Assembly (NCBI GenBank): GCA_965112155.1
Contig: OZ218102.1
Origin: Podarcis liolepis
Taxonomy: Eukaryota
Reading direction: 5' to 3' (one strand)
DNA length: 64,000 bases
The notes below the pieces were generated by a model that did not search any database, was not told the DNA's origin, and worked only from the letters and a program-made list of their open reading frames with translations. Below are positions 25,268 through 64,000 of the stretch, piece by piece. Made by a program: the position numbers and the translations under genes. The stretch's first letter is position 1; the number at the start of each line of letters is the position of its first letter.

Positions 25268-25500
25268 GTGAGGCGCCGGAGGGGAGGCGGGCGGGAAAGT
25301 TTTCCTCGGCGGGGCAGCCGGGCGGAGGCGGGCGGGAGGGCGGCGGGCAGCCCCGGCCCTGGAGGAGGAGGAGGGGGGGGCCGGCGCCGCTCGGGAGCCT
25401 CTGAGCGCGTGCAGAGCGCGGGCGGCCGCCAGGGAGGAGGGCCGGGTGGCGGCGGCGGCGGCGGCGGAGCCCCCGTTCAGCGACGGTGTCCCTTTTGCAG

Positions 25501-25632
25501 ACACGCAGCGCGCCCTGCGCCTCCTGGAGGACTACCGCGCCAAGCTGAGCCGGGCGGACGAGAGGCAGCTGCGGAGCTCCGTCGAGAGAGTCATCGGCAT
25601 CTTCCAGAGCAGCCTCTTCCAGGCTCTGCTAG
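25501..25632 (+). CDS. DLG1: DLG1 L27 domain exon
   Basis: ttttgcAG acceptor; [44 protein letters not shown]; 132 nt; ends at a non-canonical AG|GCGAGT donor. Confidence 0.92.
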
Positions 25633-26925: not shown

Positions 26926-27346
26926 TCGTGTTACACTGGCTGCTTTCCAGTCCTCAGGTGTGGAGGCTGATCTCAGTTAAATTTTTCTGTTAGAAGCTTA
27001 GCAATTTCACATTTCTTTTCCATGGGAACTCTCAAGTAGATGCTAGAAAGCCTGGAAAGGTTTTCTCATTCTAAGAGTTTACTGCCCCCCCATCTTGTAT
27101 AATTGGCTGTATATCCTAAAGTTGTGCTTTCTTTACAGGCTTTGTAGGTTCTGCCACTGACAGTTAGCATGTCTCTTTGTGTGTGTGCCATGTGGCGCTG
27201 GTGTTTTTGCTCACAAGATGCTCCCTTATTCTGATGGAGATCTGATTATAAATTGAAGGTGGGAGGAAGATCAAGTAGAAAGCAGCAACTGTATACAGCA
27301 TCTCTTCTGAAAATCAAGTGCTGAACCATATTTTCTCAATCTCCAG

Positions 27347-27513
27347 ATATTCAAGAATTTTATGAAGTGACTTTACTTGACAATCCCAAAAGTGTTGATC
27401 GCTCAAAGCAGATTGAGTTTGTACAGCCTGTGAATACATGGGACTTCTCCAGCCTTCCAAGCACAACAGTGACTTCTGAAACACTGCCAAGCAGCCTTAG
27501 CCCAACCACAGAG
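27347..27513 (+). CDS. DLG1: DLG1 beta exon 3 (end of L27 + Ser/Thr linker)
   Basis: ctccAG acceptor, GAG|GTATGA donor, 167 nt. Encodes [56 protein letters not shown]. Missed by the ORF track. Confidence 0.96.
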
Positions 27514-32312: not shown

Positions 32313-32342
32313 ATGGACTGCCTTTGCATTGTAACCACCAAG
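32313..32342 (+). CDS. DLG1: DLG1 alpha-isoform first coding exon (MDCLCIVTTK, palmitoylated C3/C5)
   Basis: gcaATGG context, 30 nt, AAG|GTAAGA donor, phase 0 into the 43044 exon. Peptide identical to the alpha-SAP97/PSD-95 N-terminus. Confidence 0.95.
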
Positions 32343-36732: not shown

Positions 36733-39109
36733 CTGTTGGCTGCTTTGATTTCAATTAGAAAAGATGGCAAAACCATCTATGCATTGGTATTGTGCTGGTT
36801 TGGATGATTGTGAGCAAGTCCTTTGGACAAGCGGATGTTTGCAAGGCAGCCATTGACTTGCCTTGCTGAAGTGGGAGTCTTTGTCCATCGCATTGTTAGG
36901 CAAGACAACCTCTTAATGCGCCTCAAATGCATTCTCTGGGTGCGCCTGGCGGGGTGGGTCTTGAGGCATCATCCAAGAAAATGGGCTGAGAGCTTGTGAT
37001 TCCCCACCCCCAACACTGTATGGACCCAAGGACCACATCCTGCCCCTTTTATGCCGCTTGCCCAGGTTGGCTAAATCTTGGAGAGCCTGTCTGACTGTTA
37101 TGTTATTTTAGAAAGCAGGCCTTCGCAGAATAGGTATGGATGAACTCAAATGGAAACACACCAGGCATTTGAAAAAAAGATCTGCAGTGTTCCTATTCTG
37201 AGGGCAATTAGTCTAAATCATTTATTCTAAAACCACGTGGAATGAACCGCCTGCGATGTTTGTGAAAATGATACACACATTAGCTGCCAGTTGTTGTGTA
37301 CTGGATGTGGCCCTCCAGTCCATCACTTGGCTTCCAAGGTGTTCCTGAAGCTGAAGAGGTTCCCTGCCGGAGAGAGAAGGAATCCCACGCAGTTCAGGTG
37401 TGGTCCTTCTGCCCTCTCTGCTGTGTGTGAACCTGGCTAGGAGGGCTGGCTGAGCCCAAGTAAAATAGCTGGTCCCGGAATAAAACAGCCATGCTTGGAC
37501 CAAATAAGTTCTGCCAGTGCGCTCTGGGCTAAAAAAGCCCTCCTCCTCCTGGGGGAGGAGCGCAAAAGAACTAAACTAGCCCCTCAAAGCGGGCCCAAAC
37601 TATTCTGAGAAGTTAGCAGTGTAGTGGGATGGAACTTCCGCCTGTTTTTACCCTTTCCACGGCCACACTGTCCTTGGGAGGGTTGTGTCTGTTTTCTAGA
37701 CTTGGTGATCAGAGGGGGTACGGGGCACCACATTGCCTTGCCCTGGCTGCTTCCCTTTGTTTTTGTTCCAAAGCGGTGCAAGCGGGACCCTGCATCAAAA
37801 GTGCCATGTGCTGATAGATGGACCCCCCTTAGGCGGCAGCATAACGGTCAGATGAACGGTCAGCTCTGCCAGTTCCAGGTCTAAGTGCAAGAGCGTATTG
37901 TTTGAGGGGACAGATGAAACAATAAATCCTCTCTGTTGCAATTTCTTTAATGCAGCAGTGAATATTGCTATTGGATTGCCCTTTTGTTTCAAATCCTTAT
38001 CTAGTCTCAGCAATAAATGCTGCTGCCCCAAAGCCATTGTCCAGCCCTGCAAAACTGGCTGTAAGGCAGGATAGATTTAACAGTACCCTGCAGCGCTAAT
38101 AACTCTTATTGCAGTCTGTGGGTTGGAAATGAAGGCGCAGTGGTGAGAAGGGAAGCCCCTTTTATTCTGATGGGAATGTCTGGGTGATTCATGGCTGCCC
38201 ACACTGATTTCAGCTTTTCATTCCTGGTGCTGATTCACTGTGAAGCATTCCACGTATGCAGGCTGCAATAATTAACATTGTTCTTTGCTACCCACTAACA
38301 CTGCTGCCCCTCCGTTGCCCTGCCATTGCAATGAAACCTCTGCTGATACCCGATGTCTCCGTTCACCAATGGAAATGGGCTCCAAGAGAGACAGCTTCAG
38401 GATGCCCCATATATTGGTTGACTGTTCCAGGTGCCAGCCCTCCCTGCCTTCCAGGTAGACAGAAGTAACAGACAGGACCAGGAAATGTGCAGCGAGTGGC
38501 TGGATATTTTGAAGTTGGCTGCATTTACTTGGATTTCCAAGTTCCTGCTACAGTCTGAAGTGTGCTTGCTGGAGCCTCTCTCTCTCTCTCTGGCGTGTGC
38601 GTGTGTGTGCCCCCTGCCATGATGATGGGTCGGTTGCTGCAGCGTTTTGCCCCTCCCCCTCAGCATCTGGCATCAACGGAGCAGTGGCTGCAGTCAGATG
38701 AGCCGCTTTTATCCTTATGGAGGAGGTAGCGGAGCTTACTTTGCCTGCAGCAGGTGGAACTGCCTCGTCCCCTTCTCTCCCTCCCTCCCTGCTCCCCTCC
38801 CTGGAGATTTTTGGCCAAGAGGATTCCAAAAGGGAGCCCTTGCAGAGTTCTCTTCATGCTGGTGCCTTTTCTCTAGCTGAAGAGGGAGCCACCCTCTTGG
38901 AAAGGGACACATGGACCTCTTCGGCTCGACCCCGCAGGCGGTGGGGACTTCTGCCACGAGAAATAATTCCGTGCTGTTTTTCTGTCTCAGCTTTCTGTTG
39001 AGAGGATCATGGACTCACACGTCCAAGGCAGGCAGCAAGCCCTTCTTTCCCAAAGCATTCTTCTTGAATCTCGGTTGCTGAATGATGGAGGTGTCCTGGG
39101 TCTGAAAAG

Positions 39110-39211
39110 ATGTCTCCTAGCACAAAAAACGTGGATTGCTTTTCTCCCGTGCTGTGCCACTGCAAAGTAGCATGCAGCAACAACACTGTCTCTTTAATGT
39201 TTGGATGCAAG
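39110..39211 (+). CDS. DLG1: DLG1 alternative first exon, PSD-93-alpha-like (MSPSTKNVDCFSPVLCHCKVACSNNTVSLMFGCK)
   Basis: aagATG start, 102 nt, AAG|GTGGGT donor, phase 0. Aligns without gaps to the recalled DLG2 N-terminus MSPVVKDPDCFTPMICHCKVACTNNTLSLMFGCK. Confidence 0.85.
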
Positions 39212-43043: not shown

Positions 43044-43214
43044 AAATACCGTTCTCACGATGACGATGACACGCCTTCGCCAGAGCACGGCTCCCCCCGG
43101 GAAACTCCCAGTGAGGCAGCAGCTCCAGAGCTTGTGCAGGTTTCCGAGAAGAGCCTCTCTCAAGTTGAGAGCGTCCATGGATTTGTGTCCCACTCTCACA
43201 TTTCGCCAGTCAAG
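43044..43214 (+). CDS. DLG1: DLG1 common N-terminal exon (MAGUK_N_PEST region)
   Basis: ccccAG acceptor, AAG|GTAGGA donor, 171 nt. Encodes [57 protein letters not shown]. Confidence 0.95.
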
Positions 43215-56500: not shown

Positions 56501-59500
56501 TGGTTAGTGTATGAAACATGGAAAGAGCAGGCCTGTCTGGATGCTTCAGTGCAGGGGGCAGCAAGAACGCGCATCGCCCCCAGGGATCCCTGTACTCTGG
56601 GCCCTGGTGGCTGCTGCTGAGGAGTTCTGCCAGGTGCTGCTCTGGAGTCACCCTGCTGGCGCCAGTAGCGCCCGTCTCACAGGCGCCCAAACACCAAGGG
56701 ACAAAAACGCCCCGCAGCAGCTTGATGCCGTTATTTGTGGCAGGGATCCTGCAGCATCCATTGTGGGCAGTTGCAGCCCAGTAGCTGCGGTTGCCACTGC
56801 AGAGTATGAAAGCCTTTAAGCACTCCAGTGGCTTTCAGGAGAAGCTTTTTGGCAATGACCCACCACGGAAAGGCTGAGCCAGGGATGAATGGGGAGGATT
56901 AGCAGGGTGGGGCAGGGTTAGCTGGGGTGGATGGTTAGGAGCCAGCAGGTGTCTTGCTGTCCCACAGGCAGAGATGCAAAATTTCGGTGAATAACAAACA
57001 AACATGCTATTGCAAAAGGCTTGGGAAACTCTTTATCTATGCACGTGGAGCAGTTAAATCTCAATTTGGTCTGGCATTTTTCTCCAAGGTGTTGCTTGAG
57101 CTTAAATGCTTCTAAATTGCAATCAGGAAGGCTTGCTGTGTGTTTAATTTCAACTCGCCAGCCCTCAACATCCCTAGAAGGGGTGGCTGGAGGAGGAGAG
57201 GGATGGAGATTCTTCCTGTGTGCATCACATTTCCTTAGTAAGTAGAGCTCTATTTAGCTGAAGCTGAAAGCCACTTGGATTTTCAATACTGTATTGTGAA
57301 TAATTTGGTATCACCTGCAAATTTGGTCACCTCTCAGCTCACCCATAACTCCATGTTGTTTGTGAAAACTTTGAAAAGCGCCCGTTCTTATCTGTCTTCA
57401 TTGTGAGAGCTACTCTGCTATCATATCACATTAGGTGCCGAGTTCTGGCAGCTGTGTAGCACAAACAAGATGACGGAGAAACAAGAGGGGGGTGTATCAG
57501 ACTGTGCAGCATCCCCCCTCCCCGCAAACAAAGGTTTGCAAAAGTAGGGGGGGGGAGCACAAACTGAGGGCTGGTGTCAACCTGTGTCATCACATCCTAC
57601 TGACGATTGAACATGCTCAGTGTCTTAGAAATCCCGACGGTCTGTTGGTTTATGGGGGGTGGGAATAGAAAACTGGCAGGTGGGTGAAAAGCAAGACTGG
57701 CTGCCTGCACACCAAACAGGAGCATTTTCTTTGGCAACACCTTGTTGTAGATCTCATGCTCTGTTTTGTATTCTTTAACCATTTACCCATTCAAATGAAG
57801 ACTTACCTGCTAATTCCAGGACTGTGAAGGTTGCTCAAGAACCTTCGTCAGGGAATTGGTGGAAACCTTTTGAAAGTACAAGAATTTGATGTCTACCAGT
57901 TCATCTGTCTACTAACTTGCTTGTTGGCATTCTAAAATGACAGTCTGAAATGTTAGTAAGGATTTCCTTTTGCAGAAGCCACGTTGATCCAGCTTCAGCA
58001 AGACTCAAGAGTTGTATCTCACAAGTTTCCACCCTTCGGTCTGGAACAAATATTAAGCTAACTAGAGCTGGGAAATATTAGGTTTTAACATCGCAGTGTG
58101 TCACCAGCCAGACATCGCGGTTTGCTGATAATACCATGATGTTGAAAAAAGCTGCATTGGTCCCATCCCTTGCGGTGGTGGGTGAAACTGCCACATCTCT
58201 CCCTGCGGAGCCGAGGCTCTTTCATCCCAGAGCCTTGCAGGGCCCAAGCCCCCTGCGCAGCTGGGGGGGGGGAGGCTTGCGCCCAACAGCTGAGTGAGCC
58301 AGACCACTCCCCAAGATGGAGGGAGCCCTGATAGGCTCCCTTGGCAAGGCTAGTTCGCCTGCGAGGGGAAGGGGGGGCAAGCAACCTCCTTCTCCTGGGA
58401 GAAAGAGGCCACTTGCTCCCCCCCCCCCCCCAGCTGAGTGAGTCTGGATCCTCCTCCTGCTCTTGTGCAAACAGAAAAATTATTGGGGCTTCCTCAGCTT
58501 GGGAGCAGGAGCAGATTTACGCCCCCCCCCCCGATGACTTGTGTGAACTGGTGGCGGGTCTGGGTTTCCGTCAAACTGCTTGGCTAGTAAAACCACCGTG
58601 GCTCCTGAGTCCCTCTGCCTCCAGCCCAGCCCGGCTGCAGCTTGTTTCTCCCTAGGCATGCTGAGTGCTGGGGGGGGACGGGGACTGAGGAGTGGCAGAG
58701 GTTTCACCTGTGATACAGCGCTGAGTGAAACCCCCATTGTGGTGAGCCCCTCATACCGGTCCTGGGCAATATATCGCCAGGCCTGAAGCTGACCTGCCTA
58801 TAATTTCTTCAGTCTCAAGTCTTACTTTGGCTACTTTCCAGTTCTCTAGAATGTAGGCTGATTTTAGGGACAAGTTATGTAATTTCCTTAGAAGGCCAGC
58901 ATTCCCATTTACATTCTTTAACTCGCAGGTGGATGCTGTGGGGACCTGGTGACTGGTTAACTTTTAATGTCAATAAGCCCTTGTTGGCATGTGGCTCAAT
59001 TTTTTGGGTCTCTCTCTCTCCCCCCCCCCCTCTCTCTCACACACACACAGATTAAATTCCGCTTCTCTCCTTCCCAAGTACTCTGTTTGCTCCCTTGTGT
59101 AATGCTCCATCATCTCCCCGGCTGGTCTCTTGCTTCTGGTGTATTTAAAGACATGGCTGTTGTTTTCATTATGCATCTCTCAGATTTTTTCTGCCTTCCC
59201 ACTCGCTGCCGGGAACTAGAGCAGTGCTTCTTGCCAGTGGTGTCTGTTTGGCAGGGATTGTGTGAGCTGTCAGTAGATTTGAAGAGCCCAGGTTGTGCCT
59301 CAATTCGCCGGCCGTTTCCCAGGGCCAGGAGTGGGGCTGCAGCTTTAGCCCTCTCTCTGAGGTCATGTGCTTTCCCCAAGCCAGTGCTTCTTGCAGATGG
59401 GTGCGTGAAAAGAAAGCCCCGTGGGCAAGCGCCTGCCTGTGTGTGAAAAGGCTCCATGCCGCTGGGACACCTGCACAGCCGAGTGCCTCAGCCATGTGGA

Positions 59501-60003
59501 GCCCCTACTCACGAGCAGGCACTTGCAAATGGGGCTCCTTTCTCGCACAGCTGTGTGCAGCATGTGGCTCTGGGTGGTGTGTATGCGTAGGCAGCTCTAC
59601 GGTGCCAGGTGAGGCCGAAAGGACAGCCCTCTGCTCCCCACACTTAGGCCATGGAGTCTGGAGAGGGTCGCATCCTGCCCTCTTGTGTGCAGTTGTGTAC
59701 GGAAAGGGCTTGGGGATTCTCCAGTGATGGATTCGTTGTCATGCAGACACACAACCAATGCGGAAGCACCAGCAGATGTTTCCCGTCACGTCTTTACAGT
59801 ATATCACAGATGTCATCCTGAGCCACCAAATTGCCCCTCTTCCTTTCTCCAGACAACGACTTCTTCTTCTTCTTCTTTTTCTTCCCCTGTAATGTTGGAT
59901 GAATAATAATAATAATATAGGTTGCCAGTTCATGTTTTTAGGTGAGGTGGTGCATCATATTTTACTTCCAGTTTTAAAAGAAGCCATAGGAGATGCTTCC
60001 TTG

Positions 60004-60016
60004 GTTACCTAGCAAC
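60004..60016. promoter_or_regulatory. RFX X-box motif with nearby CRE-like site
   Basis: GTTACCTAGCAAC fits GTNRCC-N-RGYAAC; TGACGTGA at 60070-60077. Confidence 0.4.
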
Positions 60017-60477
60017 TGTGTGATATCCCACCTGGGTCCCCACCTCCAGTAATTCCTTTTAGCTCCTGCTGACGTGAAACCAGCTGGAATCAGACCCTCC
60101 TGCGCTCACTTTCCTCTTGTCTCTTAAGTTAAGGTTTCAGCCAGGGGGAAAGTGCCTTATCTGGGACCAGTTGATGACCTTCTGTGGGCCTTCCTCTTCT
60201 CCCTAGTAAGAGGCAGAGTGAAATCATGTCCTGCTCTGTCTTCCCTCCATTGTAAGGCGCATGGTATGTCCTGTGGCAGATCAGGCTGTGAGCAGCTTGG
60301 CCCATTCAGGGGATACTTGGGACAGGTCTCTTGTCCTGGGGCCATGTGATGAATCCAGAGGCAGCTAATCGTGTGCTCCTTGCTGTGTTCTGCACCTGAG
60401 CTTTGCCAGCTTTTTATTCATGTATCTCAAGGATTTATATGTCCCCTTTTAGGGCATAGCCCTTACAAGATCATATA

Positions 60478-60682
60478 CAGTCGTACCTTGGATCCCAAAC
60501 ACCTTGCAACGCAAACATTTCAGCTCCCGAATGCAGCAAACCCGGAAGTGAGTGTTCTGGTTTGCAAATGTTCTTTGGATCCCGAACGTTCGATGCGGCT
60601 TCCAATTGGGTGCAGGAAGCTTCTGCAGCCAATTGGAAGCCGCGCCTTGGTTGTCAAACGTTTTCAGAAGTTGAACAGACTG
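60478..60682. mobile_element. Internally deleted Tigger-like MITE
   Basis: TA|CAGTCGTACCTTGG start; 'aacccggaagtgagtgttctggtttgc' core shared in reverse with the 30019 copy; ends GACTG|TA. Confidence 0.72.
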
Positions 60683-61917
60683 TACCATGATGAGGAAAGT
60701 TCCATTAAGATCCAACAGAATGGTCAGACCAAAAGAATTCTGTGTCCTAAGAATGCCAGGAGGAAACAGCAACCTAAAAACTTTGGGGAAGGAGAATCTT
60801 CAGGTCAGGAGCCATCTTGGATTAAGCTGTTCTGCAGGCGTTGGTGTCCAGTTTTCTTTCTCCTGTTCCCTCACAGTGGTGGCTCTGGCTTGCCTCAGAG
60901 GAGGTCTTGGAAGTCACACATGACCCCTGCTTCCCAGGAAGGGGCTGAAGAAATGGTCTGCTCCCCAGGGAGTCCAAGAGCTGATAAACCCAGGGAAAGA
61001 GGCCCCAGAGTGTCTCAACGGTGGGCCCCTGCGCCTCTCCGCTGCATCCACTGCCCCCTGAATTCTGAGCTGTCGAGTGAGGTGGATGCAGACCCTCTTT
61101 CTAATCCACAGAGCCCGTCTCTAAGGACTAGTTCCCACCCGGCAGCCCCTTGAACCTCCACGACAGAAGCACAGCAGCCTTTGGAGGTAGGGGATCAGAG
61201 TTGTGGCCTTCTCGTACTCTACCACTCTTTGTCTTCAGCAGCTGCAATCCACAAGATTAGCTTGGGGGCAGGATGGTTTGGGAGGTCTCTGGAGTCCTCC
61301 TCACCTAGCAACTGGAGGCCACCACACCACACACTCCCTCACTTGGTAGCTCCTCCAGCAGGGACGCTTCCTCCTCCGCCTCCTTCGCCCTCTCTGAGGG
61401 GGGCTTTTCCTTTGCTTTGGAGAGAGGCAGTGTGTTTCCAGCAGTGCTGGGGGGGGGGTTACAGCTTTTGGGTATCTTTGTTGCCTCCTTTGCAGGGCCT
61501 GGAGGCAGCATTCCATTTGAGCGCAGAAGGGCTGGCCTGGCCTTGGCAAGCAGACCTGGCCCTCCCCAGCACACCTGCAGCCATGTGATGTACTGATGAG
61601 CATTTGCCCTCATGCTCAGTCGTGGCGCAGGGTCTCAGGCTTCCTTGCCGTGTTGGAGTTTGCGGCATAAAGGCACTGTGGACGTGCCAGGTGACCTTTG
61701 GCGCAGCTTCTCTTCCCTCTGCAGAGCATTGATTCTGTTTGCCTGGCAAAGGGGCCGGCAGCGTGTTGCCCAATGGGACGCCTTCTGTCTCTGGAGAGGG
61801 CGTGCAAAGCCAGGCTTCTGCTGGACTGGCCGGGAGAGCATTTTGCTCGGCTGCCTGGAGGAAATGTGCCTCTGCCTCTCGGCTTCTGCCTGGGCTCCCT
61901 TTTAGCTGGGCTCCTGG

Positions 61918-62232
61918 ATGGCCGCCTGCTCCCCCCCACGCAAGTGCTGCTGTGGGGCTCCTGACGGCTGTGCAGTGGGGCCTCTGAGGCAAGCTGGCTC
62001 TGCCACCAAGGCCTGGGCAGACGCGGCACCTCCTCCGGGGCTCCAGCCCCAGGATGCAGCCGGGCAGCCGCCTTGTGTTTCAGCCACGCTGCCTGTGGCA
62101 CCCAAACACAGGGGCAGGTTCACCAACCTGCGCGACAGTGTGAAGAAGAGCCCCACCAAGAGCCCCGCCAAGGTGAGGGCTGCCAGCGGGTGGGGCTCCG
62201 ACAGCTCCTGGTCCCATTGCTCCTCGGAGAAG
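61918..62232 (+). CDS. DLG1: DLG1 alternative first exon, PSD-93-delta/SAP102-like; two in-frame donors (62172, 62232)
   Basis: MAACSPPRKCCCGAPDG...SATLP...LRDSVKKSPTKSPAK|VRAASGWGSDSSWSHCSSEK|. AAG|GTGAGG and AAG|GTAAGC are both phase 0. Motifs match the recalled DLG2 SQTMP and LWDSVRKSPHKTSTK. Confidence 0.72.
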
Positions 62233-64000
62233 GTAAGCCCCCCCCGCTCCGCCCCAGCCCCTTCTCCCTCCGTGCAGGACTCCAGCGCAAGGCGTCAGCT
62301 GGAAGGGGGCTTGCGTGCTCCTGAAGCGCTTTCCTGCTCCCTTGAGCTGCCACCATGTCAGGCCAAGGAAGGTGGTTTCCCCACAAGTTGGTTGTGAGTG
62401 AGTGTGCAGGAAACCTCAGGTTGGTTTTCTGAGGCTTTGGTTTTCTGTGAATGGAACTGTAAAATTGTGCAACCCCCAGAGCCCACCCTTTGGAGGGGGC
62501 TTCAGCAGCAGGAGTGGTCTTTTAAGCACTTTAAAAGGTATTTGGATGAGTGGGGGGCACTGAGGGGGGAGGCTGCGTGTTTGTGGGTAGGAAACAAGGG
62601 GCAGCGCATGATGATGAGCAGGGCTCTCCAGTGACCATATTGATTCTGTCCAATTCCAATAACCTATTTATAAAGCAGGTCACATGCTGTGTGCTTGTAG
62701 AGGATTCAGTTGGACCAGGGCTTGGCAGCCTTTTCTCTCACGCTTATCTGCTGACCGGGAGAAGGAACAGACTGGGTGCTGGCCAGGATCCTGCCCCTCT
62801 TTCTCTGACCCCCTCTTCTCTCCCTTTTGGCCCAGGTCACTCTGCCTCACTAGGGGGCCATTGGCATTTGGTTGAGGGCTCCGTAAAAATAGGCCAGATA
62901 ATTTGCCTGTGGCCCCAATTTAGAGGCCGGCTTGCTGGTCCTTTGCTTCTAAAGGGTGGCCGGGCTTGAGAGGTCTTTAGGGCACTTGCTTGCATCTTTA
63001 GTAGTATTAATTTACATGTGCTGAACATTTGCATAATGCCCAAGGGAGCTGTTTCTGCTTCACACCCTGGCCAGGCTTGTGCCCTGGGGAGTCACTTTGG
63101 CAGCGGTTTGACTTGACTCCCAGAGGGACACTCCGTTGTCTCTTGAGGCAGATGGATGCCAGCAACAACCATTTATTTATTAACTTTTTTATACTGCTCT
63201 TCATCTGAAGATCACAGGGCAGTTCACAACATAAGCTTACGAAAGAAGAACACAAAGAACATCAGGAAAAACAAAAGTAAACTAATAATCTCCGTCCCAC
63301 AAACACATTTCCAAGGCCGTTTGAGTGTGTAATCAGCAAAAGGCCTGGTTATGGAGGAACATTTTCTCCTGGCACCCAAAGGTGTATAATGAAGGCTCCA
63401 GGTGAGTCTCCCTGGATGGATAGGATAGATGGACTCGGCCTTCGACTTGCTGTGACGGCTGTCTGTCCTGCTCCTTTCTCCTTTGTTCTTTAGTCTTAAT
63501 AAACTCCCTGAAATTGATGTTGGGCTTGGGTGCATTTCTGCAAGACTCAAGAGGAGAGAGTGCGAGGGCTTGGGCAGTGGAAAGCTAGGTAAGTTGGGTG
63601 GTCTCTCTGCTTTCCTTCTAAAGGTTTGCCTTGTACTCCCAGAAAGAGCCTCCCCTGCCTGTGGCCGCCCCTTGAGAGGCCTACCTGGGCTGGCCGTTGT
63701 GGGAGGAAGGCGCCCAAAGGCCTCCCCTCCTTCTGTTACAGTACTTGCTGCTCACTCTTCCTTGCTCTCTGGAAGTGCCTAATAGGACCAGTGAAGTAAA
63801 AAGGGCAGGTGCATTATTCTTTTGAGTGATTGTGGATTCAGCCTTGTGTGTGCTGGATGCCTCTGGGTAGGTGGAGATGTCTTAATAGCATTGTGGCCCA
63901 CCCCCCACCCCCCGATTCCCCCCCTGGCAGGGGGACGCAAGGGGAGGAAGGGGCACTCAGCCGCAGTTCTGCTCTGGCTCCCAGCAAGCCCAGGGCTCCC

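Follow-up and report, generated by a model that had tools for sequence, protein, structure and literature searches.

A probable alternative first coding exon of DLG1/SAP97 in Podarcis liolepis, conserved between fish and birds and represented in public gene models

The stretch of DNA analysed here (the window) comprises 64,000 nucleotides of Podarcis liolepis contig OZ218102.1, and holds the 5' half of DLG1 (SAP97) on its plus strand, as tblastn and the translations of its exons show. An open reading frame begins at position 61918, with the KYR/PEST exon of the gene 18.7 kb upstream of it, and raises the question of how it comes to be there: as an alternative first exon, as an internal cassette exon, as a small gene nested within the intron, or by chance. 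Our conclusion is that DLG1 very probably has a conserved alternative first coding exon here, with 61918-62232 as its coding part. An initial annotation, made from the letters alone, had assigned the frame to DLG1 and placed it downstream of the KYR exon. Both points stand: the L27, alpha, second Cys-rich and KYR exons all lie upstream of it on the plus strand, and 61918 falls well beyond the KYR exon at 43044-43214. Among these neighbours, the second Cys-rich alternative first exon at 39089-39211 is, judging from its tblastn match, real. No later DLG1 exon was found by tblastn between 62233 and the end of the window at 64000. The features of the locus are collected in Table 1.

Table 1. Coordinates in the window of the exon at 61918, its parts and donor sites, and the neighbouring DLG1 exons (a slash in a nucleotide string marks the exon-intron boundary)
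Feature	Position	Strand	Basis and remarks
DLG1 L27 exon, first part	25488..25631	+	tblastn of P0031 (Labeo rohita), 65% identity; tblastn extent
DLG1 L27 exon, second part	27334..27492	+	tblastn of P0031; approximate, start estimated from similarity onset
DLG1 alpha first exon, MDCLCIVTTK	32313..32342	+	donor AAG/GTAAGA
Second Cys-rich alternative first exon (…CHCKVACSNNTVSLMFGCK)	39089..39211	+	tblastn of P0030 (Crenichthys baileyi), 76% identity
DLG1 KYR/PEST exon (KYRSHDDDD…)	43044..43214	+	57 codons, starting and ending in phase 0; 53-59% identical to P0030/P0031 by tblastn
DLG1 alternative first coding exon (probable), coding part	61918..62232	+	105 codons (long form); ORF, donors, profile match
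N-terminal Cys cluster (Met1, Cys4, Cys10-12, Cys18)	61918..61971	+	ORF translation
Conserved core, codons 55-85	62080..62172	+	S-x-T-L-P ... K-x-R-x-[KR]-F-x-N-L-R-D-S-V-K-K-S-P-T-K-S-T-A-K
20-codon tail VRAASGWGSDSSWSHCSSEK	62173..62232	+	coding in long form
Proximal donor GTGAGG	62173..62178	+	AAG/GTGAGG after codon 85; 85-aa form; consensus score 11.3
Distal donor GTAAGC	62233..62238	+	AAG/GTAAGC after codon 105; 105-aa form; consensus score 10.9

In the translation of the 64-kb window, the frame opened by the ATG at 61918 runs to a stop codon at 62395-62397. Its product starts with MAACSPPRKCCCGAPDGC, in which Cys occupies codons 4, 10, 11, 12 and 18, and goes on to SATLP at codons 55-59, codons 71-85 encoding LRDSVKKSPTKSPAK; the Cys cluster and both motifs had been described beforehand, and are borne out to the base. 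A further ATG, at 61864, shares the frame of the main one and is closed by the TAG at 61903-61905, 12 nt before the main ATG, and would make a short upstream ORF if the transcript start lies further 5'; in P0003, a homologue from a related species, the frame of this upstream ATG stays open.

By itself the 61918 ORF proves nothing, since frames of 100-170 codons are common around it, on both strands, in this GC-rich DNA. That many such frames overlap here, and that scans of the exon product against Pfam and NCBIfam found no family, are the points from which one might argue that the ORF arose by chance in an intron rich in GC. It is conservation that settles the matter. A profile built from 20 homologues, with the row of the window left out, gives the 61918 ORF 113 bits (E 1.4e-33), whereas the next-best six-frame ORF in the 64 kb reaches 7.5 bits against the same profile; together with conservation from fish to birds this match refutes a chance origin, to which we attach practically no probability.

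The extent of the conservation was assessed in several ways. Searched by phmmer against 1.84 billion cluster representatives, the 105 residues gave 17 matches, with E from 2e-15 to 1e-4, and word-indexed searches added many homologues to these. A 21-sequence profile, applied to the 8000 candidates that shared most words within a length limit, yielded 107 protein matches, every one of which has the core sequence NLRDSVKKSP, exactly or with one residue changed; more than 100 homologous ORFs display an almost invariant core, F-x-NLRDSVKKSPTKSTAK. Invariant positions in the alignment (A1) are P59, F68, N70-V75, K77-T80, S82, A84 and K85, and M1, T57, R65, K76, K81, T83 and V86 are kept in at least 90% of its rows.

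Against this background the Podarcis liolepis copy has some features of its own. It starts MAAC, where most homologues have M-T-T-[YH]; it has Pro83 (62164) where at least 90% of homologues have Thr, and Pro62 (62101) where most have Ser. A close relative carries the consensus residues Thr83 and Ser62 (62164 C>A, 62101 C>T), so the two prolines are private to the lineage of the window. These two changes sit beside or within the most conserved motif. The MAAC start, Pro83 and Pro62 could reflect relaxed constraint in this lineage. In the same relative two 3-nt deletions within the exon (62025, 62029) keep the frame, the indels in the nearby intron being of 1, 2, 3, 7, 9 and 23 nt. Frame-disrupting indels in close relatives had been named at the outset as evidence that would count against the exon; in the one relative examined no frame break was seen.

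The N-terminal Cys cluster, with which the initial annotation opened its description, is not constant in the family. Among the 101 homologues with a recognisable start, at least two Cys within the first 24 residues are found in 38, and no Cys at all in 47; the conserved function cannot lie in a cluster that about half of the homologues do without. The spacer between start and core is expanded in teleosts by Gln- and His-rich runs (P0011-P0015, P0022, P0112, P0113), and between 51 and 250 residues separate Met from the core. At least three sequence types of the exon occur in teleosts, which suggests several paralogous copies there.

Several of these homologues stand at the head of DLG1 gene models. 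The 'disks large homolog 1-like, partial' of Mesitornis unicolor (XP_010191602.1) opens with the exon, continues from it as …CSNCSLEK/PTEAVPSSSP… (the slash marking the junction) and runs through PDZ1-2; a DLG1 model of a second bird, Apaloderma vittatum (XP_009871624.1), likewise starts with the orthologous exon. In teleosts, the Oncorhynchus nerka 'discs large homolog 1-like protein isoform X4' reads …PFSFEK/ANPPPVVVNTDS… and extends through PDZ1-3 and SH3, the Tachysurus ichikawai 'disks large homolog 1-like isoform X24' reads …AQWK/QTDVTPPSS…, and further models with the exon come from Labeo rohita, Lucifuga dentata, Lates japonicus and Danionella cerebrum. The orthologous exon supplies the start codon in DLG1 models P0009, P0021, P0022, P0024, P0026 and P0102. 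According to precomputed Pfam content, the spliced models comprise PDZ, SH3, MAGUK_N_PEST and PDZ_assoc, and L27 is absent.

Two statements of the initial annotation are touched by these models. It had deduced that the isoform lacks L27 and the PEST exon, and this is exactly what the annotated bird and fish models show. It had also called the exon hidden, which it is not: NCBI models of two birds and several teleosts already list it as a DLG1 N-terminus. The exon is thus genuine, conserved from fish to birds, and known as a sequence feature; already contained in public databases, it does not count as an element of a new kind. Our search of the open literature accessible to us found neither a named delta- or gamma-type SAP97 isoform nor the core peptide in print, and the SAP97 literature searched treats the alpha and beta N-termini only.

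One database entry could be taken to mean that the ORF is a separate small gene nested within a DLG1 intron, an idea that we regard as very improbable. In this entry, XP_064858812.1 (P0011) of Oncorhynchus nerka, the DLG1 exon together with a long Gln-rich insert is annotated as a protein of its own, 'myb-like protein I'. The exon is, however, spliced to DLG1 PDZ exons in several models, including isoform X4 of O. nerka itself, and the name evidently derives from the Gln-rich insert. XP_064858812.1, in which the exon is called as a separate gene, is probably a mis-annotation.

Assembled sequence data bear both on where the exon begins and on where it ends. Ten small sets of Logan contigs (44-162 Mb), none of them on record as RNA, were guessed to be RNA, and four of them were placed on 59001-64000; neither expression levels nor strand can be read from such contigs. 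Set X5, from a relative about 95% identical to the window, provides a contig of 413 letters, depth 16.8, lying on 61902-62233, with 61 unaligned letters before 61902 and 26 letters past 62233 that are unlike the window; cover in X5 is zero over 62234-63008 and only about 2 deep upstream of the exon. Set X1, from the same organism as X5, provides a contig of depth 3.3, the level of introns in that set, which is colinear with the window over 61902-62305. In set X17, which is labelled with the window's own species, cover is confined to repeats. All four sets reach depths of hundreds to thousands at 60337-60670 and 63176-63509, which are interspersed repeats, and the contigs have many loose ends and opposite-strand joints there.

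As to its beginning, the exon might not start with Met1 at all, and be instead an internal cassette exon, entered through an acceptor at 61905/61906 (ccctttTAG/CTGG) and joined in frame to the KYR exon. No stop interrupts the frame from 61906 onwards, and the end of the KYR exon is in phase 0; the X5 contig has its 61 unaligned letters on this side, and the ab initio models P0030 (Crenichthys baileyi) and P0031 (Labeo rohita) chain L27, KYR and this exon. But the X1 contig, which runs on into the downstream intron, stops aligning at the same base, 61902, so the boundary looks like local divergence rather than a splice; and P0030 and P0031 arrive at their chain by reading through introns, on which ground we rejected them as proof of an internal exon. 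Met1, moreover, is nearly invariant in the homologues, and the models that have XP accessions or isoform names begin at Met1 or inside the exon. We consider a cassette exon improbable, though less so than a nested gene. Around the exon the observed/expected ratio of CpG is only 0.33-0.52, which, as a CpG-island test, lends little support to a promoter of its own.

At the other end of this first coding exon two donor sites come into play. Both are phase 0, they lie 60 nt apart, a rough consensus matrix, with the frequencies of the standard donor consensus, puts both among the best 0.4% of the window's 3268 GT sites, and they are the sole strong donors between 61900 and 62400. Conservation picks out the distal site. 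The tail that precedes it reads VKA(A/T)SGW(V/W)SD(G/S)S… in tetrapod-like sequences; teleost tails differ, yet always keep Trp and end in [FLS]-x-[KQ]. In read-through ORFs a Val codon (GTN) follows the tail directly in at least 90% of rows, and similarity stops there, which is the pattern that a conserved distal donor predicts. All spliced models but one use this site, the exception being Danionella DNTS_024675 (P0093), which reads KSTAK/ANPPPVVVNT. The X1 contig continues in colinearity past 62233, so the break of the X5 contig at that point is not species divergence, and fits a splice at the distal donor in the close relative. The distal donor, giving 105 amino acids, is the conserved and used one.

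That both donors are used, so that 85-aa and 105-aa N-termini arise in this species from 5' splice sites 60 nt apart, we think unlikely, although it has more in its favour than any of the readings set aside above. The proximal GTGAGG (11.3) scores as well as the distal site (10.9), both being strong and in phase 0. Codon 87 is AGG (Arg) in the window, whereas Lys is the residue of most homologues there; should the codon for this Lys be AAG, the change to AGG places a G at +5 of the proximal donor. The Danionella model, too, joins KSTAK straight to ANPPPVVVNT. Against this, none of the contig pieces listed from the four sets ends at 62172, the other spliced models and the contig of the relative use the distal site, and the 20-residue tail is kept as protein, including in the roughly one in ten homologues that have no Val (GTN) after ..AK. 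Of the tandem donors initially proposed, then, two strong in-frame sites 60 nt apart, giving 85 or 105 aa, are there, and the distal one is conserved and used; use of the proximal one is seen in a single fish model.

The following course of events would account for the exon. A transcript would start here, probably under a promoter of its own within the intron that follows the KYR/PEST exon; translation would begin at ATG 61918; and the distal donor would be spliced, at 62232/62233 and in phase 0, to the next DLG1 exon, presumably a proline-rich exon of I1A type or of ANPPPV(L/V)VNT type, both of which would lie beyond the end of the window. The product would be a DLG1 isoform that has PDZ1-3, SH3 and GK and is devoid of L27, of the alpha palmitoylation motif and of KYR/PEST. 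Such an isoform would be unable to join L27 partners, and would be without the lipid anchor of alpha.

What the exon would put in their place is predicted to be a disordered extension of some 105 residues bearing short linear motifs. AlphaFold2, run with the alignment, returned a mean pLDDT of 54 and a pTM of 0.13, with no secondary structure, indicating that the N-terminal segment is disordered. A profile search of the PDB gave chance-level matches only (E 0.24 or worse), a search of the ESM Atlas with the exon product gave no usable match, and no Rfam family matched anywhere in the window. The constrained part of the extension is the basic, Ser/Thr-rich motif F-x-NLRDSVKKSPTKSTAK, followed by the Trp-containing tail. 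S-P-T-K, within the core, fits S/T-P-x-K/R, the minimal proline-directed kinase consensus, and the core may thus be phosphorylated by a kinase of that class. By analogy with other DLG N-termini, the five Cys in the first 18 residues of the window copy could serve in metal binding or acylation.

In the gene models, then, DLG1 has an isoform whose N-terminus is of a third kind, with a core almost invariant from teleosts to birds. This is useful for annotation, and offers a reasonable lead for work on the part that MAGUK N-termini play in synaptic or membrane targeting. We judge the chances to be evenly balanced that this third class of vertebrate DLG1 N-terminus, with neither L27 nor MDCLC, is a true paralogue of the N-termini of PSD-93-delta and SAP102. 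Were it so, the multi-promoter plan (beta, alpha, second Cys-rich, KYR, delta-type) would predate the vertebrate genome duplications, the SAP102 N-terminus would not be unique, and the invariant F-x-NLRDSVKKSPTKSTAK motif would be a docking or phosphorylation site for regulation throughout the family.

The kinship with PSD-93-delta and SAP102 that the initial annotation proposed is suggested by gene position and by a presumed likeness of motifs. PSD-93-delta would resemble the DLG1 exon in S-x-T-M-P and DSVRKSP, and presumably all three N-termini have in common S-x-T-[LM]-P, DSV[KR]KSP, an end rich in K and a tail some 20 residues long. A phmmer search of the whole library, all lengths and E up to 1e-3, brought up no DLG2 or DLG3 representative; the profile search found only DLG1-type and no DLG2-delta-type ORFs among 8000 word-sharing candidates within its length limit, which is no evidence against paralogy. 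A full-text literature search with short peptide motifs of the DLG1 core, and with motifs of SAP102 and PSD-93-delta, found no paper.

The closest parallel in gene plan is with PSD-93. In Dlg2 of the mouse, the first exons of the epsilon and delta forms come after exon 5, which is common to alpha and beta, and are spliced onto exon 6 (PMC6389146). The first exon of PSD-93 delta thus occupies the same position as the DLG1 exon, after KYR and spliced onto the following exon, and its N-terminus, which has Cys up to position 92 (PMC6389146, supplement 3), is similar in length to the 105-aa form of DLG1. The order of exons in DLG1, L27, alpha, second Cys-rich, KYR, delta-type, mirrors that of mouse Dlg2, in which beta, alpha0-2 and exon 5 are followed by epsilon/delta/gamma (PMC6389146). 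By this analogy the DLG1 exon may well be paralogous to the N-terminus of PSD-93-delta, at a likelihood that we would put at roughly one half or rather better.

For paralogy with the N-terminus of SAP102 we would put the likelihood somewhat lower. That N-terminus is long, flexible and rich in Cys and His, binds zinc and is not palmitoylated, and has been called unique among MAGUKs in a review (PMC10620527). SAP102 is without L27 and has a Cys-rich start, and the DLG1 isoform would likewise be without L27 and without the alpha-type palmitoylation motif. Unlike the Cys/His segment of SAP102, however, the first 18 residues encoded in the window contain five Cys and no His, and about half of the DLG1 homologues are without the Cys cluster.

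Nearer still are the known products of the gene itself. SAP97 alpha and beta follow the same principle in the same gene, that of alternative first exons setting the targeting of the scaffold: alpha begins with MDCLCIVTTK, a palmitoylation motif, beta has L27 (25488-27492), and both include the KYR/PEST exon that the isoform starting at 61918 would skip. The nearest relatives of all are the annotated bird and teleost DLG1 isoforms, which have the same M-T-T-type start, S-x-T-L-P, F-x-NLRDSVKKSPTKSTAK core, Trp tail and phase-0 donor, are spliced to exons of I1A type or ANPPPV(L/V)VNT type, and include neither L27 nor KYR/PEST; from these the Podarcis liolepis copy differs in its MAAC start, in Pro83 and Pro62, in being without the Gln/His-rich inserts of teleosts, and in its stronger proximal GT.
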